Below, in pieces: positions 1-13,621 of a stretch of 64,000 bases of DNA (within the stretch, counting starts at the first letter, position 1; every line of letters begins with the position of its first letter). The translations under genes were made by a program, and so were the position numbers. Origin of the DNA: Epithemia pelagica (taxonomy: Eukaryota; Protista; Bacillariophyta). A model generated the notes under the pieces. It was not told the DNA's origin. It saw only the letters and a program-made list of their open reading frames with translations, and ran no database searches. The stretch lies in assembly GCA_946965045.2 (NCBI GenBank), contig OX337229.1:2790001-2854000 (forward strand), written 5' to 3'.

Positions 1-320
1 GGTTCCGTGGCTGTGGCTGGAACTTGTTCCATGATCGCAACTTCTTCGGGAGTCGATTCGTCGTGTGACAGGGCTTGATCAGCCCCACCATTGTCTTGAG
101 GTTCTGGCACAGCGTCGGATTCCAATCCTTCTGGTTCTTCTTCTTGTGCGTTGGGATCAAAGATATCGTGCAACTCGCTCGACGATAGACCTCGACGGTC
201 CGACCGCTCCGTTCCACGAAGGCCTCCTCCTTCGTGCGGTGCTGGAGTACCGTCTCCTTGACCAGAACCTGTACCCACCGAAAGAAGCAGCAGCAACAGC
301 AACAAGGACGGCCGTGTCAT
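1..320 (-). CDS. 5' part of a probable secreted/acidic protein, runs off the window edge
   Basis: Manual translation of the minus strand from ATG at 320: MTRPSLLLLLLLSVGTGSGQGDG...EEEPEGLESDAVPEPQD..., open to position 1. Hydrophobic signal-peptide-like N-terminus. Not in the ORF track because it has no stop in the window. Confidence 0.6.
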   Translation of the reverse strand, partial: MTRPSLLLLLLLLSVGTGSGQGDGTPAPHEGGGLRGTERSDRRGLSSSELHDIFDPNAQEEEPEGLESDAVPEPQDNGGADQALSHDESTPEEVAIMEQVPATATE

Positions 321-1324
321 GCGGGTGACACTGGACGGAACAAACATGATAGTGGACATGACGCGATAGATTCAGTTTTCGTTTTGTGTTTTTCTGAAAA
401 GTGAATGCAAGCAGTCGTTGGATGACAAGCATGACAATCTCTGGAGGATGATGACTCATCTTGGAGAAAGAGAAAACGGAATCAACACACATGTTGAATC
501 ACACATCTGTTGGACAGAAGCGAAAGGAAGCGGGAGAGTGACAAGAAGAGGCTTTCCACAGGACAGAAACGAGCCTTCACGAAATGGAGAGGAGGGTGCA
601 ATCCATTTGCTCGAGGCGTTTGTAGATGCAACAGTGCGATCATCGGCCTCGAGAAGGTACGACACGCTTCCGAGTGGCCTCTGGTTCGGAGCAAGATGGT
701 GATGGTGGGTGTCTTGCGTATGAGGCGGCCTGTTGTTTGGAACCAAGATGGCGGATTCCTGTGTGTCTGTATCTTGTTTACTCGCTCTTGTAATGTAGGT
801 CTTGACGCATGATTGAATCGTGTCGCAGTGTCAGAAGCGCCAACGGACGGCGACCATGGTGGTAAAGAGGCAACCGAACGCCTGCTGCAGTGTAATGTGA
901 CCAACAAAGTAGGATTGCATGTACGAAGAATCGCGTACAAAAAGGTGGTGGCGGCCGGAAGAGCTGTCCGCCTACGATATCACACGACGGAACAACGGCG
1001 CATGGGAGTCGTTCGAATACTCGTAGCTGTTATGCTCCGCACATCTTTTTGACGTTGCTCGTTTCGACACATGCAACCAGATCTTGGTTTGGATCTCTGG
1101 AATCTGGACTCTCGAGGCGCTTTGTCTTTTGTGGGGATAGTTTCTCGGTTCCGTGGGGGGATTTGGGGGACCACCCCCATAGTTTTGGAACTTCCACGTC
1201 GTACACCGTGATTCACCTTCTGTACAAGTCCCAACCGGAACCTCGACCGTCTCACATACAACGAGACGATTTCCCAACACACTTCATAAAAAGATGAGAT
1301 CCTTTCGGCCTTTGGACCGATGAG

Positions 1325-2089
1325 AGTATTAATACTTCCCGGTGTCGAGTCCTTTCAAGGAGGGACCGCCCGGCGAGGAGGGTAGAATGACGAGGAGGGC
1401 AATGGTCGAGGAGGGCGCACGCCCGACAAGACAATTGCCCGTCGAGTCATTCTCCCGACAAGCCGGGCGCGCCCGACGCGAGAGGACGGCCAGACACAGG
1501 GAAGTAGTAAACTTACTCCCTATCAAGCTGTGTAGGTAGTGAGAAATTCCTTGAAGCCATGTCACAAAGTGTCACACAAGTGTCACACACGAGGGGGAAA
1601 CCGCGCGACTCGCACGAAACTACTTCCCGGTTGTACAAAAAATTCCTACTGTAGTATAGAAATGTGAGACGAACTACCTACACAGTCTGGTATGGAGTTA
1701 GTATTAATACTTCCCGGTGTCGAGTCCTTTCAAGGAGGGACCGCCCGGCGCGGAGGGTAGAATGACGAGGAGGGCAATGGTCGAGGAGGGCGCACGCCCG
1801 ACAAGACAATTGCCCGTCGAGTCATTCTCCCGACAAGCCGGGCGCGCCCGACGCGAGAGGACGGCCAGACACAGGGAAGTAGTAAACTTACTCCCTATCA
1901 AGCTGTGTAGGTAGTGAGAAATTCCTTGAAGCCATGTCACAAAGTGTCACACAAGTGTCTCACAAGTGTCACACACGAAAGGGAAACCGTGCGACTCGCA
2001 CGAAACTACTTCCCGGTCGTACAAAAAATTCTTACTGTAGTATAAAAATGTGAGACGAACTACCTACACAGTCTGGTATGGAGTTAGTA
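1325..2089 (+). repeat. Head-to-tail dimer of a 375/386-bp non-coding, highly self-complementary unit
   Basis: Copy 1 is 1325-1699 and copy 2 is 1700-2085, followed by AGTA (2086-2089). The copies differ by about 7 substitutions and one extra 11-nt GTGTC(T)CACAA-type repeat. The duplicated 65/78-aa ORFs in the track reflect this repeat. Confidence 0.97.
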
Positions 2090-2492
2090 GTATACTCGTA
2101 CTCGTAGCCTCTTATGGCATTGTTATCTCGTCCGAAATCCCCCAAAATTCACAGTTCCCCCAGATCCCAATGCGCTTTTCCTATTATTAGGTAGTACTCC
2201 TAACTCCAAACTCCTACTCCAGTGTCCAGTGATCCATAATCCATAATCCTTCTGGTACGACAAAGTTAACTCGGGACCGAAAGGAGACTCACGAATGCTT
2301 CCTCTCCCCTCAGCCTTGAAGTTGACGGACTCAATTGTTATCGCCTGCCCGATCAAGACTACGACCAAAGAAAAGTAGATAGCCGTTGGAAACGCAGGGC
2401 GTCCCTCCCGGATCCTACCTTTTGGTATCATCTATCGCAATCGCATTTGGTATAAGATCCACCATACCAAAAACCAAAGTGTTGATGGCAAC

Positions 2493-4494
2493 ATGACAAT
2501 CCCAATCCCACTCACTTTGGCAGGCATAACAAAAACATCCGATCAACCAGAACCACCGTCACCAGCGTCCTTCTCCTACGACGCGCACCAACTGGCAACC
2601 ACGCACTTCAAGATCAACGTCAGAGAATCCCCAAAAACCCCAGAACCAACCAAGAGCTCACTCTTCCAATTCACTACGTTCAGACGGCAAAGGCTTGATC
2701 ACCTTTGGCGCCGTTCAGAGAATTTTAAGAGGATTTTTGCCGCTCCCGCAGTTCCCACAATTTTGCGGCCCCTCGCGTTTCCTCGGGTGCTCCAGGGGGG
2801 GGACCGTGGTCAAATCACGTTTGCTCCTGATCCAAGTGCTTCGGAGTTTGGTTCCAAAGTGGATTTGGCCTCGCGTGATACGTCGGATGTGTCGAGTAAT
2901 TTGGTATCGTTGTTCTGCCCGTTCAAGACAAGAAGCTTCTTTGCCTCGGCATCAAGAGGGTGGGAAACACCTTTTGCATCGACCCCAAGTGCTCCAAAGC
3001 CGGGGACCATGGCATGGGCGTCCCCCCTCATGACCTTGGCGTTGCCGGAGGCGTGTATATCATGAAGAATACTGCCTCAGCCTTTTGTTCACCCGTGGTT
3101 CCGATGGACATGGTCAGTCCTGAGGTAGTGAACAAACTGAAGGAGGAAAAGCACTCCTTGAGTGATTGGATCAAGAAGTTCTTGGTCCTGCGTCGACTTG
3201 ATCACATCAAGTCTGAAGGCGTTTCCTCCCCTTCTTTTGAAGATGAGGAGTCAAGGGTTGTGAAAGCAACCGTTCTTGATACTCCTATGACTACCACCAA
3301 GTCCATGCGAAAAACTTCCGTCACCTTTGCGGTTGACAACTTCTCGCCGCATCGGAAGATCCTCGCGGGCGATATCACCGAGGTTGTCCGTAGAGTCCAA
3401 CAAGACCCCTCCATCATCCCCACGGTGGTCCGTGAGGTAGAAGATTCAGTGATGGAGGCTGGCGAATTGATCCAGGCTCTATCAAAGGATCAATCCCAAG
3501 CCAAGAAGGAAACAGTGAATTCCGTGGAGTCGCTGGGCCTTCAACTTGAGAAATTGCAAATGGAGATTGGGCCGAGGGAGGAATTGCAGGAAGAATTCCA
3601 AGCCCCTACCCTGTGGGGTATCATCCAGGCCATCACCGGCTCCCTCTCCCAGTCCAAACCTTCTGTCCAGCTAGAGGCTACCGAGGAGGATAAAATTCTT
3701 CAAATTGAAGCAGACCTTTCGAAGACGGCGACCTTTGTGCGATCCCTGCAAATGGATACTTTGGCTCGCCTTCAGACGCTCCAAGCGGAATCAAAAGGAT
3801 GGGTTGACAGTCTCCGAACCAGTTTGGTCAAAGGATTACAAGGCCTGATTTCTCGTGTGGGAAATGTGGAACAACAGGTGGTGGCTATTTCCCAGCAGCA
3901 AGCTGCCTCTAGTTCCATGGGCTGGAGCAGGAGCCCGAGGCTCGCTCACTAGCGATGTCAATGCTGTCAATGTCCATTGGTTGTTGTCGTGAGCTCATCA
4001 ATTACTTCGACGAAACCATGAATGAGTTAATGACCAAATCGAAGTTCACCAAGAAAAAGGCCTTTAGTTTAGTGACTCAAGTGGTTCGGCGGTTCTTCCT
4101 TGACTTGTACAAGGTTCGAGCCCAGGTCTACTCATAGCTCTCTACAGCGGACAGTGCCGGGCAGTGTGCATGGATGTTGTATGGGGTTCTCCGAACCCAT
4201 GACATCATGACGGAGTATTCTCAGGCAAGGTTCAAAAACCACCCCTCGGTGTCTAGTGAATACATCCAATTCTTATCCACTAATTCAGGATTTGAATCGC
4301 TCAAGACGCTGGAAGACAAGGTTGATCATCACAAGCAAACGCTTGGTCAAATCACCAAGGATTGTCAAGCAGCGAAGAAGGCGGCGGAGACCGCGAATAG
4401 CACCGTTGATACGCTCAAGAAGGAATTACAAGAACTCAAACGCAACAACAAGAAGCGTCAGGGCAACTCTGGTGGTGCTGGTGACGCCTCTTGA
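2493..4494 (+). pseudogene. Interrupted gag-like ORF1 of the YR retrotransposon
   Basis: Pieces 2493-~2900, ~2900-3952 (C-x10-FC-x4-C-x5-H motif LCLGIKRVGNTFCIDPKCSKAGDH, then coiled coil) and 3955-4494 (in-frame TAG at 4135-4137, then LRTHDIM...FKNHPSVSSEYIQFL and a C-terminal coiled coil). Frame changes near 2900 and 3950. Confidence 0.65.
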
Positions 4495-4575
4495 AATCTA
4501 GGAGCATCTAAATTAGGACCGGATGATTCTACAATCGAAGACTCCTATTTAGATGCTCTTAGTGTAGCGTCGTCT

Positions 4576-5340
4576 GTGACCACAGCTACAGAAACATTTC
4601 CGTTCACCCCTCCCCGTGTCCGGCCCAACCCTCCGAGGGATATCTCCTGTCCTCGACCCACAAAGCGAATGGTGGACCGGGGGGAGCGTGTCTTCCGAGA
4701 AGATCTCTCTTGCCTATTGCTGGGGCAAAGCAGCTGCTATTGGGGCCTGGCCTTAAATCCAGGCGACTGGAGCGGCATTTACATGCTTAGCTCTGACTAT
4801 GCCGCTCGACGGGCTGATCCTTTCTGGCGGTGTGTCCCTGATTACTTCAAAGACAAGTTGTTTCTGGTCCCAAGTATCGACATGGTGTTGGGCCGCATGC
4901 TTATTTCTGTGGTTCTCCTCGAAGGCGATCCGGATTTCTTGTCCTCACAACTGGTGTCTGTGCCGCGTGATTGGGCTGTGCTTTTCTTATTGCCTTCCGG
5001 GTGGACTCGTCCGTTGTTGCCTGATGTGACCTGGATCACAGTCACTCACAAGCAATGCGGGGGTATTACCTCCGCTCGAGTCAACATTGGTAGACGGCAT
5101 GTCCCTCCCCTTCATTTCAAAACAACGGTGCGGCGGTCTATTTCTTCCGTCCTTGACCATTCGATTCGACCACAATACTGCACTGATGCCGGGCCTGACG
5201 AGCCACATTACTTGGGGGTCAGCAGTTTGTTGACTTGGGCCCTTGATTGACCTATTCTGCTCCCTACCACCTTCTTCAAATCTGGATGGGGCTACCGTCG
5301 ACTTTCCCCTGGGGAACTGGGGACTGCCTTTGATTTACCT
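4576..5340 (+). pseudogene. N-terminal region of pol, same frame as 5347-8475 and separated only by TGA at 5248-5250; possible degenerate C5-methyltransferase-like fold
   Basis: 4576 and 5347 are in the same frame. Reading through the TGA gives ...WALD*PILLPTTFFKSGWGYRRLSPGELGTAFDLPLWLDPSS... continuous with pol. Confidence 0.55.
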
Positions 5341-5346
5341 TTATGG

Positions 5347-8300
5347 TTGGATCCTTCCTCTCCTCCCTTTGTTTGGTGGCGCAGCCAATTGCTCTCCCCT
5401 CGCACGATTCCTATTAAGATCCCGTCTACCATTTTGTCCGCGGCCTTGCCTCACTTGCTCCCCGTGTTGGTCCATCACACTTGCGAGCATGCGTGTGTCA
5501 AACGTGACCCCACACCGCTTTCTCCTCCTACTCCCAAACGTGGTCGTTGGCTTCCTCTTTCTGTTGAAACGGTGCAAGATGGCGTCGTGGGTACGTGGCT
5601 CCCGGCCATCCGGAGCTTTCTCCCTCACTCTGCGTGGTTGGACGAGTCGTTGATTGCTGCGCAGGCCACCAAATCGGATGATGCCATTACCCCGTTTTGG
5701 CTTTGGGACAAGCGCATCCAGGGCATTTTCCCTTGGCTCACCACCCGCGCGTTGGACGGTTTCCGTCTCCTGGCTGTTCGCTGGTGGAGACGTTCCCTTT
5801 TTCGGGTTTTTACGGCTTATTTGCGCTCCCGATTTGGAGCCTCATGGTTGGATTTGTTGACTGTGGGCGCAAAGGCTCAAGGGGGGGGGGATATTTTCTC
5901 TTTGCAAGACGTCCGCCTCGCCGGTTGTTCCGTTCTGTCTCAGCTGCTTGGCGCCTCTTGGTGGGAATGGGATCATGGATCCTCACTAATCTTCTGGCGG
6001 TGGAATGGCCTGGAGCAACAACGGAACGCGCACTTTGGCCAACCCATTCGTGTGGCAGCCCCTCTCCCCTCCAACAAACGGCCTCAACGTCCTCCCGCTC
6101 CCGACTCGGTCCCACGGGTGGCCGCAAAACTTGCTAAAGTGTTGCATCGGGGCTTCTTCGATCAAGGACAACCGATCCAGAGTCTTACGGATTTCTTTGA
6201 TGTTCCAAAGGGCGATTCGGATATCCGGATGGTCTATAACGGAACTAGTAGTGGGCTCAATGACGCCCTTTGGGCGCCAAACTTTTGGCTCCCCACCGCT
6301 GAGTCTTCCTTGCGATTACTCACCAGCGAGTCCTACTGTGGGGATATGGACCTGGGTGAAATGTTTCTCAACTTCCCCATGGACGTTAATCTCCGTCCAT
6401 ACGCTGGAGTTGATCTCCACCCTATCGTCCATGCTCTTCCCGCGGATGCGCTGACCCACCGCAACTCGGACCAAGTTCGTTGGAATCGTCTTTTCATGGG
6501 CATGCTCCCCAGCCCGTATCACTCTGTCGAACAATTTTACCTTGCCGAGGAAGTTGCAATTGGGTCCCCCTCGGAACCGGATAACCCATGTGGATTTGAT
6601 GAGATCCGTTTCAACATACCAGGATCTTCAGACTACAACCCAGTGCTTCCCTGGACCATGAAGTGGAACACCAAATCTGATTCTATTGCTGGAGACTCCA
6701 TCACCTACATGGATGATATTCGTATAGTGGGATCCTCTGCGGAGAATGCCTGGCAGGTAGCCCGAAGGCTCCAATACTTCGGTATCCAAGACGCACCTAG
6801 AAAGCGTCGCCCTCCTTCAAAAACGCCTGGAGCATGGGCTGGCTCAGTGCAACATATCACCAAAGACGCCGTGTCTAAAACGGTAACTCAAGCCAAATGG
6901 GATAAAGGTCGAAACATCATCGCGCCTTATGTGGAGGCGTTCAAACAAACCGACACCCTCCCAACCTTCTCCCACAAACAGATGCAGCGAGATGTGGGTT
7001 TTCTAGTCCATCTTGCCCTAACTTACGCCGCCCTTATGCCTTTCTTAAAGGGTTTTTACCTCACAATGAACAATTGGAGGGGAGGAAGCAATGCTGATGG
7101 TTGGAAACTGAGTGCACGAGAATGGATCTCGTTACTCCAAGTCAAGATGGCCGATCAAGAAGTCAATTCAATTTGCGGCCTGCTGGAGGACGATGAAGAC
7201 AATCGTGACACCAAATCCACAACACCAACTCAGCGCAGCAGTGCAAAGCCTCCTCAACAAATTCAAGCGGTTCCTAGGCTGCGTTCAGATATCAAAGCTA
7301 TTGCCATCATGTTCGAAACCTCCAATCCGCCCATCATTCAAGTTCGCAGCTCTTCCATCTTTGTTGCTATCTACGGTGCAGGAGATGCGTCTGGAACTGG
7401 GTTTGGCTCTGCTATCCTCCTACCTCAAAAGAGCTTATCTTACAGGATTGGCGTATGGCGACATGACGATGTGGTTGGTGAATCCTTGAATTGGAAAGAA
7501 TTCACAAACTGTGTCGAGGCAATGGAGGAAGAGGCGGAAAAGGGAAACCTCTCATCAACGGAGCTCTTCTTCTTCACAGACAATACTACCGTAGAGAGAT
7601 GTTTCTACAAAGGTTCATCGTCAAGCGAAAAATTACTGGACCTAATAATGCGGCTTCGACGACTGGAAATGCGCTATTCCCTCCGCTTGCACATCTCTCA
7701 TGTGTCGGGCAAACGCATGATCGCCTGGGGAGTAGATGGCATTTCCAGAGGACAACTTAATGAAGGAGTCATGGCCGGCAAGCCAATGCTTTCTTTCATA
7801 CCCCTACACAAAACACCTATGCAAATGTCACCGACACTATTTGAATGGGTGAAGTCCTGGTTGGGCCCCAAGACTGAACTACTTACCCCTATGGACTGGT
7901 TCACCACGGGCCATGACATACGGGGATGGACTCTCCCATCCGAATACAATCAACTGTCCCTGCCAATCCTCAGGCCAGGACATTTTGTATGGAGTCCTCC
8001 ACCGGGAGCAGCAGACGTGGCAATCGAGCAACTTCGTAAGGCCCGGCACAAGCGTCAAAGATCTACCCACATCTTTTTCTGTCAACGCCTGCTGACTCCC
8101 AAGTGGTACAAGCAACTACACAAAGCTTGCGATTTAGTAATTGAAATACCGGCAGTGACGAGATTTTGGCCAAAGGAAAACTTCGAACCCCTCATCATTG
8201 GTTTTGTTTTCCCTTTCCTTAGGTCAAAACCCTGGCAACTCCGAGGTACACCTAAGATGTTCGCAATTGAGCGGACTCTGCGAAAACTGTGTCCGGAGGA

Positions 8301-8475
8301 TGAAGTGGCAGGACGGAATCTTCTGTGGAAATTTCTCGTTCAAGCTTGGAAAATGGGATCCATGTCAGAAGTCATGGTGTCCCGAGTGTTATTCTTTGAA
8401 AGAGGACACAAGTTTCTACATCGCGAGCAAGTTTACCCTAAAAGAAGAAAACGACGACGATCGACTGGTAGCTAG
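5347..8475 (+). CDS. Pol of YR retrotransposon: reverse transcriptase + RNase H + C-terminal MT-like domain
   Basis: RT motifs DMDLGEMFLNF, MGMLPSPY, TYMDD. RNase H motifs GDASGTGFG, FFTDNTTVE, HVSGKRMIAWGVDGISRG. C-terminal FVWSPPP...KARHKR segment resembles the DIRS MT-like domain. Confidence 0.9.
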   Translation: MDPSSPPFVWWRSQLLSPRTIPIKIPSTILSAALPHLLPVLVHHTCEHACVKRDPTPLSPPTPKRGRWLPLSVETVQDGVVGTWLPAIRSFLPHSAWLDESLIAAQATKSDDAITPFWLWDKRIQGIFPWLTTRALDGFRLLAVRWWRRSLFRVFTAYLRSRFGASWLDLLTVGAKAQGGGDIFSLQDVRLAGCSVLSQLLGASWWEWDHGSSLIFWRWNGLEQQRNAHFGQPIRVAAPLPSNKRPQRPPAPDSVPRVAAKLAKVLHRGFFDQGQPIQSLTDFFDVPKGDSDIRMVYNGTSSGLNDALWAPNFWLPTAESSLRLLTSESYCGDMDLGEMFLNFPMDVNLRPYAGVDLHPIVHALPADALTHRNSDQVRWNRLFMGMLPSPYHSVEQFYLAEEVAIGSPSEPDNPCGFDEIRFNIPGSSDYNPVLPWTMKWNTKSDSIAGDSITYMDDIRIVGSSAENAWQVARRLQYFGIQDAPRKRRPPSKTPGAWAGSVQHITKDAVSKTVTQAKWDKGRNIIAPYVEAFKQTDTLPTFSHKQMQRDVGFLVHLALTYAALMPFLKGFYLTMNNWRGGSNADGWKLSAREWISLLQVKMADQEVNSICGLLEDDEDNRDTKSTTPTQRSSAKPPQQIQAVPRLRSDIKAIAIMFETSNPPIIQVRSSSIFVAIYGAGDASGTGFGSAILLPQKSLSYRIGVWRHDDVVGESLNWKEFTNCVEAMEEEAEKGNLSSTELFFFTDNTTVERCFYKGSSSSEKLLDLIMRLRRLEMRYSLRLHISHVSGKRMIAWGVDGISRGQLNEGVMAGKPMLSFIPLHKTPMQMSPTLFEWVKSWLGPKTELLTPMDWFTTGHDIRGWTLPSEYNQLSLPILRPGHFVWSPPPGAADVAIEQLRKARHKRQRSTHIFFCQRLLTPKWYKQLHKACDLVIEIPAVTRFWPKENFEPLIIGFVFPFLRSKPWQLRGTPKMFAIERTLRKLCPEDEVAGRNLLWKFLVQAWKMGSMSEVMVSRVLFFERGHKFLHREQVYPKRRKRRRSTGS

Positions 8476-9793
8476 CGAGTGGCGGTCCCGAACCAAAGAC
8501 ATATCTGAAGATTTCGTTCGAGCCAGAAAGGGAGATCACCTAATGACCCCCTTCGAATGCGACTTGTGCATCTTTAGAAAGCTTCGGCACGTCAACCCAG
8601 ACCCTCAACAACCTCAAGACCAATATCTCCTCAAGTGCATCCGAAGAATGAACCTAGACGCATTCTGGAGCCGCGCTTCCAGCACGGTCAAACAGAACCA
8701 CTTACTCGCCACCCGAATGATTGACCGCTCCTCCAAGGTTGGAATCCCTTATGGTCCTTTCATTCGACGTCAGCCCTTCCCTTCGTTCGATCATTGCGGA
8801 TACCACACCGCTTACCTAATGCTTGATGCCTCCCTGGATCAAGGACGATATCACAAGGATCACAAACAATTCGACTCCATTCGAAAAATACGATCCACTT
8901 ATTCAAACTTTATCAGAACAACCACTTCCACAATTGTTGGCCAACTACCCCTCACTCTTCTAGACAATGACGTAAAATCTTCATTACGCATTGGCTCCGA
9001 CGAAAGTGGTTCCTTGTGGTTTGCCCTATTCACCGAAGGTTGTAAACGGAGAATGGGCCAGGACTGGAGACCGGACCAAGCTATTACCCCGGAATTAATG
9101 ATCGCTCTCCTTGATCATTTGGAACACCTCATTATCAATGCATCTCGACAGGAAGACTCCTATTTCATGATTATGGCTGGAGCGTACTTTATCACTTGCT
9201 TCGTCCTTTCCTTGCGTGGTCCAGAGGGCCTCCTGTTGAATCTAGAAGGCATTTTGAAGCACGGCGATGCCCAATCGCACAAGGACTGCGTCGTCATTGT
9301 TCTATGGGGACAAGTAAAAGGCGAACATATCGAACGATCTCATCTCCTCCCTTCGATCAACACGACTGGGTCCGGACTGCAAGTTCGACGATGGATAAGA
9401 AGAGCAGTGGTCCTCGCTCAAGATAACTCAAGGAGCAGAGGACCTTTGATGCTCCACAAAAACGGTGACAACATCAAACCAAGACAACTGGACGACCTCC
9501 TTCATCAAACACTCACGGCCATCTATTCCACCTCTCCAGAACTGTTCCCCTCCACCGCCATCAGAAACGAAGAAGACATTGCTTTGAAATATTCTGCCTT
9601 CCGATCCTTCCGCAGAGGCTCCAACACAAGAGCCAAAGAAATGGGTGTCTCCGTCCCAGACACAGAAGTCGTCAACAGATGGCGTGGCCGTGACAAGGCG
9701 GGGACCAGAAAACAAGGAGGTCCCATCGACCAGATGTATTCAGACCTCTCCCTTTTGATTGCACCATTCATCCGGTACACCAAAAGCATGTAA
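8198..9793 (+). CDS. Tyrosine recombinase (probable ATG 8300), overlapping the 3' end of pol in another frame
   Basis: Catalytic-type motifs LSLRGPEG (R), RSFRRG (HxxR equivalent), NRW and QMYSD (Y). Cys-rich N-terminus FCGN...PCQKSWCPEC and FECDLC. Confidence 0.88.
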   Translation: MVLFSLSLGQNPGNSEVHLRCSQLSGLCENCVRRMKWQDGIFCGNFSFKLGKWDPCQKSWCPECYSLKEDTSFYIASKFTLKEENDDDRLVASEWRSRTKDISEDFVRARKGDHLMTPFECDLCIFRKLRHVNPDPQQPQDQYLLKCIRRMNLDAFWSRASSTVKQNHLLATRMIDRSSKVGIPYGPFIRRQPFPSFDHCGYHTAYLMLDASLDQGRYHKDHKQFDSIRKIRSTYSNFIRTTTSTIVGQLPLTLLDNDVKSSLRIGSDESGSLWFALFTEGCKRRMGQDWRPDQAITPELMIALLDHLEHLIINASRQEDSYFMIMAGAYFITCFVLSLRGPEGLLLNLEGILKHGDAQSHKDCVVIVLWGQVKGEHIERSHLLPSINTTGSGLQVRRWIRRAVVLAQDNSRSRGPLMLHKNGDNIKPRQLDDLLHQTLTAIYSTSPELFPSTAIRNEEDIALKYSAFRSFRRGSNTRAKEMGVSVPDTEVVNRWRGRDKAGTRKQGGPIDQMYSDLSLLIAPFIRYTKSM

Positions 9794-10693
9794 CGAACAC
9801 TCAAGATTCTCAACGGGGGGTTTTCGGGACCAACAAGCTACCTTGGGCTGACATGGCAAAGCCCTGGTATCTTGCTCTGGGAGCTTCTACTCGGGTTCAA
9901 CGAGAGGTGACCGCCTGCACTTCGGGGACGACGATTGTATGGTGCTACCTGATCGTCCGCCCCGAGCTCAGTGGAGGGATCACGGGATCCTCTTGTTCGT
10001 TCCTAGGGTTTTGGCTTTTGGATCTGGTTCCCTCACTTTCATCTGAAAGCGACGACCCTTGCTGGTGAAGGATTCCATCCTTAACCCCCCACATTACGAT
10101 TCAACTTAACAGTTGTGATCGGTTGAGTTTAAAAATCTTAAATTATCCTTTCTTTCTCTTCTCTCTTATTGGGGTACTCCGGACATGGATTGCCGCTTGG
10201 ACCGTGACAAGGTGAAGAACATTGGCTAAGGGGAAGGAGCCTGACTGAGACTCAACAAAGGCCCATAGCATACGAGTACTCGTACGAGTAGATTTGGTGT
10301 GATTGTAGAGAAATGACTACTACTCGTACAAGTACAAGTAGACAAACAAAAACGCTTTCAAAGGCCAACGGTAGCGACAAAGAAGGTGGCAAGGTCTCAA
10401 GTCCAAAGGCTTTTCCGATTCCCGAGTCCAGATCTCTATTCGTAATTTGTAGTCTCTCTTCCGTATGGTGTATGGTATCTCTCGGACTCGTCGGAGTGAG
10501 CATCAGATCAGAGATGGACGTGTTGGTTGCACAGCTAGCAGACGTGAGCCCTCTATCTAATGTTTCATGGGTTCTTCTTTCAATCAACCTATTGTAATTG
10601 TACGCGTGAGCTCTCCTGGTGATCCATCATAGAGAGAGATATTAATATTAATAGCCACGCCTATCCTACTCGTGAGTTGTACAGTCGTAAGTC

Positions 10694-10905
10694 TACTTTA
10701 ATAGCTGAGGGTGGACGAGGAGGAGCTAGGGTGTGAGGAGTGGCTAAACTCCGAGAAGGGCAATAGCGACGAGGAGTGGACTGCCCCTTTGAGATCGGCG
10801 TAAGCGGATCGAGGGGGCAGTCCACGACGAGAAGCTATTGCCCGACGAGGAGTTAAGCCACGAGGAGCGCCCTGCGACGAGGAGTCCCCCGGGGCTATTA
10901 AAGTA
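10694..10905 (+). ncRNA. 212-nt rod-like hairpin with repeated tandem-GA internal loops (putative structured RNA or ssDNA element)
   Basis: Nested stems: TACTTTAATAGC/GCTATTAAAGTA, GGGTGGAC/GTCCCCC, AGGGTGT/GCGCCCT, GTGGCTAAACTCC/GGAGTTAAGCCAC, GGGCAATAGC/GCTATTGCCC, GTGGACTGCCCC/GGGGCAGTCCAC, apical GC-GTAA-GC. The inverted-repeat structure is certain; expression as RNA is not shown. Confidence 0.6.
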
Positions 10906-12211
10906 TGTTAGCTTCCTTTGTCACGAGGAGTCGTGCCAGCGCACCCTAGGTAATTTTCGGTCCTCTGAATGGATACTTAGTAGTCGTAAGCCTAATTAGT
11001 TTTAAACAATTAAGCTTGCCCTACTTTCGATATGGCACGAGGTAATCTTTATTTTTTTTTTAAATAACCGCGTCACTTAAGTGACCTCATCCGATTATAT
11101 CGGATGATTTATAACGCTTTATGTCTAAGTATCATTTGTCTCACAATTATTGGATGCCAATCAAACTCCGAGGCGTGCTTGTTGCATAAACAGTGTGACA
11201 GAATACTTAGATCTTCCATTCCCCAATCCTCTCGCGACCCGACCACGAGCGACACAAGACAACACAGAACACAGCAGCATGCACCAACACAATGGGAACT
11301 CCTACACAACACTAGAATAAAAAATCAAAGTACAGTAATTTTTGGGGCTTAGGTAGTGGGAGTGTGGGGAGTGACTTACTCCTCAGTGAGTGCTCAGTGA
11401 GTGGGGAAGGGTAGGACGACGAGTGGTGAAGGTAGTCATATACGAGTATGTAGGAGGACGAATATTCCCGCGACAAGGTGATAACCCGTAAATGATCGAA
11501 AGGAATAAGGATTCGTACTTCGTACAAGCACTCCTTCTACTGTCTTAGTCCCGAATTATGAATACCCATCTCCTTTCTCCTTTTGGATATTGTTTCATGT
11601 TATGGATTATTACGCTCTCGACCTGTCTTCATCGAATGAGAAACTTTAGAGAGTACCCAGAGCATATTGGATGTTGGAACTTGCACATGACTTCTCATTC
11701 ACGAATCCAGTTGGGGCTAACGACATTCTACATCACACTGTACTAGTTGGTGGCATCCGTTCCCCTACCATCTTTCCAACATTACCAGGCACATGTTTCA
11801 CTGGACGGACGTATACTCCTTATCTATGTTATTTCTAAGCGCTGGGGATTTCAATGTATGACAACGAGAAATCGGCATTGATCTTTACGTGACAGAAACT
11901 ACGCCAGCTCGGTAGTATTCCCATCGCTCTCGACCATCTCACATTGGTTTTGTCATGCTGGTTTTGTATTAACAAAGCCAATGATTCATGGCAGGGCAAA
12001 TCCCGAGTCATACCAATTGGCAAGGCGTTTTTGTCCCCAGAAAAGGCGGTTGTTCAAAAATGTATTGACAGCCTGGGTATTCATAAAATATACTAGACAC
12101 CACGGAACAAAAAGGTCGTCGGATTGCTCCTTGCCCACAACAAACAACAATAACAACAACAAAGAAGAAGAGAGTGTTTCGTTTATCGTGCCTACTACTG
12201 AACTAAAAGCC

Positions 12212-13621
12212 ATGAGTCGAAACGAGTACACGGAAAATGTCGATGGACCTTCATCCAACACTGGTGGCAGCACGGTAGCTCGAGACAAGGCTGCCAAATT
12301 GCGAGAAAAGAAAAAGTTGCGAAAATCATCCTCGATTCGATCCATGCGGTCCTTGTCCAGTACCACGAGTGAACGAACGAAAAAGTCGACGACGACGACA
12401 CGGAGAATCAAGACACGAAACAGCAGCAAGACGTCGTCCTCCTCTCGCAAGCGGTCCTCCAGTGTTCCCAACCGCAAGGATCCCGAAGGCATGACCGCCT
12501 CCTCCATCATGATGTCCCCCAAAGTCCGATCCCATGATGACGATCAAGAACGATTGGGCAAGGCGCAAGAACGCATTCAGTCCATGTTTTCCGAACAACG
12601 CAAAAAGGAACAAGATCGACGCAAGGAACAATGCACTCCTCAAAGACACCGACCATCCTCGCAAACCAATGCTACTACTCCAAGAGGTGTCGAAGAACGA
12701 AAAAAGTTGGCCCAATTGTGGCATGAACGATTGGGTGAACCCGATCGAGCCACCATGAAGGCTTTGGTGCACAAGAAATCACAGGGATGCGACCTTGATC
12801 TGGAAGATGTGGATTTGTTGTCCTGGGGGAATCTTCCAGCCATGACAGTGTCGTCATGTTCGGAATCAAGTGATGGCAGTGACGACAAGAGTGCCTTTCA
12901 AGTCGTATCCAAACGGACAGCCGGAACAGAAGACTTTTCTGCTTTGCGACGATCAGCTTCCAGACGTTCGATTTGCAGTACACCTCTCAGGAGGACGGGC
13001 TTTGCTGGCGACCAACAACACGATTTGAGCTTTTCCTCTTTCTCTTCCCATGGGGCGTTGGAGAAGATCGATGCAGACGAGAGTTTCACCAGCATTAAAA
13101 AGTCATCTACTCCAAAGACCAAAAAGAAATCGAGACCATCACTCTCCAAGGCTCTTGAAGCACAAAAGGGTGCCTCCTCTTCAGAGGACGAATGCGAAAG
13201 CAAGGAGAGGAGCAAGGCAAGCTCCAAGAAGTCATCAAGATCGAGTAGTACGAGACGGCGACGTGATTCCAGTCTTGGAAGACACAGCATTGCTGGCACT
13301 TCGGCGGCATCGGCTACCTTGGCGGACACCAAGAAGCATCGCAAGTCATCCAAGAAAAAGCTCCACAAGGATAGTGAAACGGCATCGCTGACCAGCCGGA
13401 GCAAGACCAGCAGTAAAGATCCATTCGGCGTACCACCGTCCAGGGGACCACAAGGATATGTGAACCCGGAACTCCAACAAAAGCTGAAACTATACAAAAA
13501 GTACCGCAAGTCGACCTCTTCTCTTTGCTCAGCCAACAGCAGTACCTGTGGAGAGAGCGTCAGTCATCGAAGTGAGGACCTCGAACACATTTTTCCAAAT
13601 TTCGTTGTACACGGAAGCTAA
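12212..13621 (+). CDS. Uncharacterised Ser/Lys/Arg-rich, probably disordered protein
   Basis: Long ORF (track 11981-13621); likely ATG 12212 (MSRNEY). No recognisable domain. Confidence 0.65.
   Translation: MSRNEYTENVDGPSSNTGGSTVARDKAAKLREKKKLRKSSSIRSMRSLSSTTSERTKKSTTTTRRIKTRNSSKTSSSSRKRSSSVPNRKDPEGMTASSIMMSPKVRSHDDDQERLGKAQERIQSMFSEQRKKEQDRRKEQCTPQRHRPSSQTNATTPRGVEERKKLAQLWHERLGEPDRATMKALVHKKSQGCDLDLEDVDLLSWGNLPAMTVSSCSESSDGSDDKSAFQVVSKRTAGTEDFSALRRSASRRSICSTPLRRTGFAGDQQHDLSFSSFSSHGALEKIDADESFTSIKKSSTPKTKKKSRPSLSKALEAQKGASSSEDECESKERSKASSKKSSRSSSTRRRRDSSLGRHSIAGTSAASATLADTKKHRKSSKKKLHKDSETASLTSRSKTSSKDPFGVPPSRGPQGYVNPELQQKLKLYKKYRKSTSSLCSANSSTCGESVSHRSEDLEHIFPNFVVHGS

Follow-up and report, generated by a model that had tools for sequence, protein, structure and literature searches.

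A conserved 5'-terminal hairpin of Crypton-like tyrosine recombinase transposons in the diatom Epithemia pelagica

Introduction

What are the three long hairpins, here called rods, that lie to either side of a DIRS-like tyrosine recombinase (YR) retrotransposon in the genome of the diatom Epithemia pelagica? They occur in a stretch of 64,000 nucleotides (the window; GenBank assembly GCA_946965045.2, contig OX337229.1, positions 2,790,001 to 2,854,000 of the forward strand), to which all positions without a prefix refer. A preliminary description, made from the letters alone, took them for a packaging, priming or circularisation signal of that retrotransposon, used in place of the inverted terminal repeats and internal complementary region of DIRS elements or the split repeats of Ngaro elements. 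Its fallback was a small satellite element mobilised by the same retrotransposon.

The analysis reported here shows that the rods belong to a family of Crypton-like YR transposons in this genome, of which they form the conserved 5'-terminal hairpin; no reverse transcriptase (RT) was detected in these elements. The rods of the window sit in non-autonomous miniatures, namely a head-to-tail dimer of 375 and 386 bp (A units) and a 745-bp composite (B unit); these elements have been recently mobile, and A and B units were inserted independently beside the unrelated retrotransposon. We class the family as Crypton-like elements with previously undescribed structured ends, a label that expresses the comparison of element architecture and YR features with the published description, not a tree placement among CryptonF, S, A and I. 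The explanation favoured as a whole, in which the rods are the cis recognition module of these elements and act in a folded single strand, is given a probability of roughly 0.78. Their identity as the cis end-module of Crypton-like elements, taken by itself, is held with still greater confidence.

Structure and covariation of the rods

Two covariance models were used to describe the rods, R1 for the B type (rod 3) and R2 for the A type (rods 1 and 2). The rods of the window, with their R1 matches, are as follows.

1333 to 1506, plus strand: rod 1, hairpin of 174 nt, loops of tandem G.A pairs (R1 match 1325-1514, 80.5 bits, sense strand only)
1708 to 1881, plus strand: rod 2, a copy of rod 1 (R1 match 1700-1889, 77.4 bits)
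10694 to 10905, plus strand: rod 3, hairpin of 212 nt, loops of tandem G.A pairs (R1 match 10686-10912, 212.4 bits sense and 77.9 bits antisense)

Folding bore out the proposal that rods 1 and 3 are single unbranched hairpins. The minimum free energy (MFE) of rod 1 is -111.7 kcal/mol, compared with -62.4 +/- 4.0 for its dinucleotide shuffles (z -12.2), and that of rod 3 is -133.2 kcal/mol, compared with -68.7 +/- 4.8 (z -13.4); shuffled sequences thus fold far worse than either rod. The reverse complements fold more weakly by 17-30 kcal/mol (-94.9 for the minus strand of rod 1, -103.5 for that of rod 3), and these energies, together with the sense-strand scores of the covariance models, uphold the plus-strand specificity that had been suggested. 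Under DNA parameters the fold of rod 1 is unchanged from that obtained with RNA parameters, with a small strand asymmetry (-48.2 plus versus -44.6 minus). The loops had been described as tandem G.A pairs around one central pair, and the MFE structures of both rods agree with this, since each 5x5 loop has a central G-C pair with a 2x2 tandem mismatch, GA/GA or GA/AA, on either side. Each rod contains 5-10 loops of the 2x2 tandem-mismatch kind, purines account for 89% of the internal-loop columns, and the tandem G.A pairs are possible on the plus strand only. Direct reading of the sequence confirmed that both rods start with TACTT and end with AAGTA, that a GGGCAAT/ATTGCCC helix is common to rods 1 and 3, and that the tails of the two modules are similar. 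A search of Rfam over positions 1-13000 at E <= 1 returned no match and no ribozyme.

The helices of different rods had also been said to differ in sequence while keeping their pairing, and this natural covariation was found on a larger scale. Among 70 predicted pairs, 20 were compensatory (changed on both sides with pairing kept) in a MAFFT alignment of five B-type rods. A model-fitted alignment of six sequences gave 22 such pairs, as against 2-7 when the partners were slid by 1-3 columns; 93.8% of its cells pair, its covariation score is 0.33 (0.03-0.07 in the slid controls), and none of 500 shuffles reached the observed values of pairing and covariation. G.U pairs are tolerated in the helices. 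The outer helix has been wholly exchanged between lineages (TACTTTAATAGC, TACATCTGCTCC, TACTAAGGAGAC and TACATTTGCTGC, each with its exact complement), while the purine loops stay in place. These data support the view of the rod as a nucleic-acid structure that is under selection and specific to the plus strand, in which the helices covary and the purine loops hardly change.

Mobile units that carry the rods

The A and B units of the window, with their junction cores and pairing boxes, are listed below, where ^ marks a unit boundary, crossover or insertion point.

1324 to 1328, plus strand: left junction core of the A dimer, GAGTA (TAGTA in the empty allele and at the unit junction)
1325 to 1699, plus strand: A unit copy 1 of 375 bp, a Crypton-like miniature that is non-autonomous, its phase arbitrary within the core
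1515 to 1541, plus strand: IR-L, the post-rod box, complementary to the 3' terminus of the unit (circular fold, duplex energy)
1673 to 1698, plus strand: IR-R, the 3'-terminal partner of IR-L (circular fold, junction fold, duplex energy)
1699 to 1703, plus strand: TAGTA core of the A-A unit junction (sequence reading)
1700 to 2085, plus strand: A unit copy 2, a 386-bp variant with one additional GTGTC(A/T)CACAA repeat (sequence comparison)
2085 to 2089, plus strand: right junction core of the A dimer, TAGTA (empty-site contig, sequence reading)
10685 to 10689, plus strand: left junction core of the B unit, TCGTA (T-N^GTA; junction comparison)
10687 to 11431, plus strand: B composite unit, 745 bp, GTAAGTCTAC...GTGGTGAAG, made up of a rod sub-unit and a rod-less sub-unit
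10978 to 10982, plus strand: internal TAGTA core followed by GTCGTAAG, a repeat of the left junction; boundary of the two B sub-units
11433 to 11437, plus strand: right junction core of the B unit, TAGTC (junction comparison)

Both modules recur across the genome. BLAST found at least 45 copies of module 1325-1699 (375 bp) at 95-99% identity and at least 40 of module 10684-10990, and none of the copies elsewhere adjoins the interior of the retrotransposon. The flanks of A units differ at every locus, where the units stand as monomers or as head-to-tail dimers of mixed 375- and 386-bp variants; the two lengths arise from 3 or 4 copies of the 11-nt word GTGTC(A/T)CACAA, which lie in tandem in the tail of the unit (1558-1589 and 1933-1975 in the window). 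B units are found in forms of 745-760 bp, about 1005 bp and 5.35 kb. The covariance-model search that had been proposed as a check revealed many further rods, at least 85 on the sense strand with R1 and at least 135 with R2, counts that are lower bounds with 150 candidates scored per search. Scores range from 205 to 230 bits for the sense strand versus 70-105 bits for the antisense strand. The earlier remark that rods 1 and 3 share almost no alignable sequence is roughly correct, yet R1, although built without A rods, matches these over their whole length with 70-80 bits, and does so on the sense strand alone. The notion of a small satellite was of the right kind, as the units are independent, multi-copy and recently mobile; the partner of the rods is a different YR from that of the retrotransposon.

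A further family of about 25 rods of 202 nt scores about 165 bits with R1 (e.g. C13:2249296-2249497, C1:430837-431038 and C16:3162378-3162579) and is known by coordinates and score alone.

Insertion sites and arrays

An allele without the A dimer is present in contigs of two public runs (X1 and X2), which were taken as genomic DNA from the depth and sizes of their contigs. Position 1323 is joined directly to 2085 in these contigs, and exactly 1324-2084, the 761-bp A dimer, is missing. The empty site reads ...GATGA^TAGTAGTATAC... in them; set against it (...GATGA^TAGTAGTA...), the filled allele has a 5-nt core at each junction, the three cores being GAGTA, TAGTA and TAGTA.

Flanks were compared for more than 30 copies of the A unit and about 30 of the B unit. 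The units proved free of terminal inverted repeats (TIRs), long terminal repeats (LTRs) and target-site duplications, and at either end the core recurs as a short direct repeat. The A unit is bounded as ...T^AGTATTAATACTT ... GGAGT^TAGT..., whereas the B unit starts with T-N^GTAA(G/A)TCTACTTT and ends with ...GAGTGGT(G/A)AAG^GTAG; one core is nevertheless found in the unit junctions of both families (GGAGT-TAGTA-TTAATAC in A, GAAGG-TAGTA-AGTCTAC in B). Left and right junctions of many copies place the crossover between core positions 2 and 3 (T-N^G-T-A) and define T-N-G as the requirement on the target. Directly past the crossover, GTA-N4-TAC is present in all rod types, its TAC opening the rod at a constant spacing of 7 nt, and the general layout of a unit is thus T-N^GTA-N4-TAC, rod, post-rod box ... 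3' box, T-N^G. Insertion is conservative and site-specific, has a fixed orientation and regenerates its sites; because regenerated sites invite further units, head-to-tail arrays are formed. At locus L061, for instance, a 5.35-kb B unit is followed head-to-tail by a 1-kb B unit and then by an A unit, with exact junctions.

Two other readings of the ends were tried and rejected. A 3-bp target-site duplication of B units (GTC) fits the window copy and fails for other copies, and an origin as Helitron, HUH element or miniature inverted-repeat transposable element (MITE) is contradicted by the lack of TIRs, target-site duplication and a Rep gene. The A units at L010 and L015 (C10:1856353 and C10:1895731) lie in an (AGT)n microsatellite, a tract of repeated target core. 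As both loci have the same downstream flank, they probably represent a segmental duplication. Every B unit, including the window copy at 10687-11431, starts with the consensus 5' splice site GTAAGT and ends with AG. A sense B insertion in a gene could be spliced out, as with introners, with the exon junction not restored exactly.

Autonomous elements and their tyrosine recombinase

The same rod is found in autonomous relatives of 4-5.4 kb, where it stands upstream of a tyrosine recombinase gene that is split by an intron and has no detectable RT beside it. The 5.35-kb unit is present in two copies that are 98.6% alike, and at L061 it contains one gene of two exons with a GTAAGT...CAG intron; its YR measures roughly 540 aa, and the gene is colinear with an uninterrupted 522-aa metagenome homologue (P0023). 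Language-model features of the C-terminal exon point to integrase, DUF3504 and NDC10_II, and the pattern RR..RH..Y is near-invariant among 86 homologues. When an AlphaFold2 model (pLDDT 72) was compared with the PDB by Foldseek, tyrosine recombinases made up 43 of the top 44 matches (among them Cre, Tn1549 Int, XerA, IntI, XerH and HP1), plus QRICH1; the best E-value, at a probability of 0.99, is 0.017, which is weak. No useful match came from Pfam for the ORFs of the 5.35-kb unit, and the YR alignment, used as a profile against the PDB, gave a blank result. Judged by the motif, the language-model features and the predicted fold, the autonomous copies encode a tyrosine recombinase. The other open reading frames (ORFs) of the 5.35-kb unit are of low complexity and without Pfam match, and at this level of search no RT or other transposase was seen; nor was a Rep/HUH endonuclease, the YR being the sole recognisable gene of the autonomous units.

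The N-terminal exon has 39 matches in the genome, which form clades at 85-100%, 41-47% and 32-37% identity. Of 35 YR genes, 30 are preceded at a distance of 1.3-2.3 kb by a rod on their own strand (20 of 22 in the B clade and 10 of 13 in the A clade), a linkage read for most genes from rod coordinates alone. The same arrangement is seen in loci L082-L087, L090 and L018. Loci of ERZ21939226, evidently the same organism because the bit scores are identical, provided the sequences of divergent rods C, D and E and of three A-type variants upstream of YR genes. The protein partner of the rods is this RT-less Crypton-like tyrosine recombinase, which is distinct from the YR of the retrotransposon; BLASTP between pieces of the rod-element YR and the retrotransposon YR showed no similarity.

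Relatives of the rod loci were also sought in metagenomes, where none was found and an exact rod-core pattern gave 0 matches. Eight short metagenomic contigs with YR homologues contain no rod, a result of little weight as they cover at most 1.2 kb upstream of the gene. At L018 (C20), a long (GGAA)n microsatellite lies on the reverse strand at 2260-2490, inside an A-type autonomous element and about 200 bp past its rod.

Predicted pairing across joined ends

In folding predictions the rod does not stop at the end of the hairpin defined above. In the A unit, the post-rod box (1515-1541) pairs with the 3' terminus (1673-1698), with a duplex energy of -37.9 versus -12.4 +/- 3.3 for shuffles (z about -7.6). 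With the 3' end paired to the post-rod box, the full rod would be formed only across joined ends. A unit-length (375 nt) A sequence folds to a near-continuous rod when made circular, and the real junctions that were folded (A-A in the window, B-B at L061) each give one long helix, in which the 3' terminus of one unit is paired with the post-rod box of the unit downstream of it and the core lies in short 3-bp helices between single mismatches. The best complement of the post-rod box over several kb downstream was sought as a test of prediction, and in six autonomous elements the predicted partner was found 4-5 kb downstream, directly followed by T(A/C)G. The sequence of the 3' box varies by lineage with its complementarity kept, from GCTGTGTAGGTAGT/ACTACCTACACAG in A to GACTATGAAAGTAGT/ACTACTTTCATAGTC in L090. 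An attC-like R-box pairing of the core with the sequence just 3' of the rod was considered as well and set aside, as it is present in A and not clearly in B-E.

In the mechanism proposed here, the rod would run on across the joined 3' and 5' ends and place the crossover core inside one long, G.A-zipped helix that can form on the plus strand only. The recombinase, or a partner protein, would recognise the folded single plus strand with its 3' and 5' ends adjacent. The likeliest form of this substrate would be the single-stranded DNA of a circle, or ends brought together during replication; a concatemer or the panhandle of an integrated copy are alternative forms. The stacks of tandem G.A pairs may serve to stabilise the helix on one strand only and to avoid a perfect palindrome in duplex DNA. 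Recognition of a folded strand would explain the strand specificity, the oriented insertion, the arrays and the replicative rise of short units. Drawn by analogy with bacterial systems, the folded-strand mechanism is put forward tentatively, at somewhat less than even odds. More doubtful still is its full form, in which a eukaryotic YR transposon family would move via a folded single-stranded DNA intermediate whose G.A-zipped, junction-spanning rod rebuilds the site and dictates the strand.

Alternative explanations

The preliminary description regarded the rods as terminal signals of the enclosed retrotransposon, which is annotated as follows.

2249 to 10264, plus strand: DIRS-like YR retrotransposon, a neighbour separate from the rod elements (ends from the copies on C5 and C7)
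5347 to 8475, plus strand: RT/RNase H ORF of the retrotransposon, 1042 aa, YMDD, RVT_1/RNase H language-model features
8198 to 9793, plus strand: YR ORF of the retrotransposon, 531 aa, Phage_integrase/ALOG language-model features

The rods do flank this element in the window, and at a copy of the same family on C5 an A unit (L076:1896-2085) lies 32 bp past the 3' end, which may be chance in a region rich in transposable elements or a common preference for target DNA. The bracketing is nevertheless one of position only. Two further copies (C5:2222043-2230936 and C7:1862108-1870765) have homology to the window solely from 2249 (CTTCTGGTACGAC...) to 10264 (...CAAAGGCCC), the flanks of the three copies are unrelated and without target duplication, and the rods lie beyond these ends by 157 bp upstream and 420 bp downstream. 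A role in packaging, priming or circularisation of the retrotransposon is refuted as a structural claim by these shared ends, and with it the identity of the rods as DIRS or Ngaro terminal repeats. More than 200 rods occur elsewhere without the retrotransposon, contrary to the expected co-location with DIRS-like pol/YR ORFs, whereas the C7 copy has no rod in a covariance-model scan; the empty-site allele lacks just the A dimer, and the two YRs are unrelated at the sequence level. Nor do the rods replace missing split repeats, because more distant relatives of the retrotransposon have Ngaro-like split direct repeats in the order A1 ... B1 A2 B2, and the family therefore has terminal structures of its own. 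What remains for this explanation is a probability close to nil. Hardly more can be granted to the idea that the rod has no function and is a by-product of a fold-back palindrome origin with homogenisation at the DNA level. Intrastrand templated repair is an established way of keeping palindromes alike, but it would erase the non-complementary G.A loops, which are kept in all lineages while the YR proteins have diverged to 32-41% identity.

Two functional alternatives deserve more weight, although both are considered unlikely, the second more so. The rod may be an element of the RNA level, transcribed in the 5' leader of the YR mRNA and in the short units, and may act there as a protein scaffold, as a template for an RT in trans, or as a long hairpin that G.A interruptions shield from Dicer; these roles share the low standing of the explanation to which they belong. 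It would fit the position of the rod on the sense strand 1.3-2.3 kb upstream of YR genes, the tolerance of G.U pairs, the promoter-like and first-exon-like sequence of the B unit, and a strand asymmetry that is larger under RNA parameters (-111.7/-94.9) than under DNA parameters (-48.2/-44.6), and tandem G.A loops are classic stable RNA motifs. However, no RT is encoded by the elements (at the level of Pfam), the substrate of a YR is DNA, a fixed spacing of 7 nt separates the rod from the DNA crossover core, the predicted rod continues across the DNA junction, which is needless for a leader RNA, and no Rfam family or ribozyme is matched. Alternatively, the CGAGGAG/CGACGAG words might be direct-repeat, arm-type binding sites of the recombinase in double-stranded DNA, with palindromy secondary, for which the arm sites of lambda Int and the accessory sequences of cer and psi are precedents. 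The purine words do have the same orientation in both arms, are nearly invariant among lineages and stand next to the crossover core. Such improbable accessory sites would, however, leave unexplained both the compensatory double substitutions in the reverse-complement sequences between the words and the covariation of the 3' end of the element with its post-rod box.

The reading of the rods as a folded recognition module of Crypton-like elements has its own difficulties, and several observations count against it. The left junction core in the window is GAGTA and not TAGTA. For the B copy of the window, the pairing of 3' box and post-rod box (-27.1 versus -26.3 for shuffles) is no better than chance. 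The covariation comes from about four B-type and three A-type lineages, all within a single organism, and of the alignments one is model-fitted. The rods have been found in this organism only, within a limited cross-species reach. Finally, the YR call draws on a motif pattern, on language-model features and on Foldseek matches whose E-values are weak, with Pfam and the PDB profile blank.

Relation to known mobile elements

According to the reference survey, Cryptons have no structured ends and no conserved non-coding sequence, and the CryptonS elements of stramenopiles have TATGG cores (Kojima & Jurka 2011, PMC3212892). The rod elements share with Cryptons the YR as sole recognisable enzyme, the lack of TIRs, LTRs and target-site duplication, a crossover core of about 5 bp that is directly repeated at the two ends, the proposed movement via a circle and the existence of non-autonomous derivatives. 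They differ from Cryptons in the 170-220-nt covarying, strand-specific hairpin that lies 7 nt from the crossover, in the complementary subterminal boxes, in a core of T-N-G/TAGTA instead of TATGG, and in hundreds of miniature copies and head-to-tail arrays. A full-text search of the literature found no description of such a hairpin.

The use of folded single-stranded substrates by tyrosine recombinases is exemplified by the integron integrase IntI on attC and by XerCD on the attP(+) site of CTX phage, and recombination of this type is resolved by replication and hence is replicative. If replicative resolution also held for the rod elements, it would explain their hundreds of miniature copies and cassette-like head-to-tail arrays. 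Like attC and attP(+), the rod is an imperfect palindrome whose structure is conserved over its sequence, is located at or beside the crossover point and belongs to units that form head-to-tail arrays. The bacterial sites are functional on one strand only, and the strand asymmetry of the rod suggests by analogy that it may be so as well. Whereas those systems are bacterial, the rod is eukaryotic and its use as single-stranded DNA would be a parallel by analogy; moreover, attC sites measure 57-141 nt and owe strand choice to extrahelical bases, in place of which the rod has stacked tandem G.A pairs.

Other systems resemble the rod elements in fewer respects. DIRS and Ngaro terminal repeats have in common with them the association with a tyrosine recombinase and a presumed circular intermediate, but no RT was seen in the rod elements and the rods are not part of the local DIRS-like element. 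IS200/IS605 elements, Helitrons and Replitrons likewise have one-strand subterminal hairpins and insert in one orientation by a short target word without target-site duplication; they have short hairpins and use an HUH endonuclease instead of a YR. For Replitrons, the other algal candidates for single-strand movement, no diatom example was found (PMC10288648). Viroid-like and retrozyme RNAs are similar in the near-continuous rod of the circular 375-nt unit and in tandem genomic copies, although the rod units have no ribozyme or Rfam match (1-13000) and their insertion chemistry points to DNA recombination.

Cryptons are the least understood class of eukaryotic DNA transposons, for which no intermediate, recognition site or mechanism has been shown. 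In the rod family, the large end structure, which covaries, is strand-specific and keeps a constant distance to the crossover, makes it possible to test how ends are found and joined; recent activity, many short derivatives and an allele with an empty site add to this. Should the folded strand prove to be the substrate, eukaryotes would join bacteria, so far the only organisms in which tyrosine recombinases are known to recombine single-strand hairpins. The annotation of the locus is corrected in that the rods are not part of the retrotransposon, and beyond this separation the analysis contributes the A-type clade, the empty site, the crossover model and the junction-spanning pairing.

Other features of the window

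Pfam gave nothing useful for the ORFs of the retrotransposon, with RVT_1 at E 0.073 only. In its more distant relatives (C5:2929884-2939336, C9:983614-993113 and similar pairs), the A segments are about 8.7 kb and the B segments 970 bp apart. This split direct repeat is of the Ngaro/PAT type, which the preliminary description could not find in the window copy; the copies in the window, on C5 and on C7 end right after B1, A2-B2 being seemingly missing. The contig of X1/X2 that lacks the A dimer matches the window over 600-2249, has small indels in 2155-2218 and stops at 2249, the 5' end of the retrotransposon. The haplotype or strain from which it comes may lack the retrotransposon as well.

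Stretches rich in TACTCGTA/TACGAGTA are located at 1015-1028, 2091-2108 and 10265-10340, that is, on both sides of the A dimer and directly 3' of the end of the retrotransposon, and may be an older repeat into which all these elements inserted. Farther downstream, at 11981-13621, lies a 546-aa ORF that matches gag_pre-integrase weakly (E 0.006) and probably marks the beginning of an LTR retrotransposon of the Copia type.

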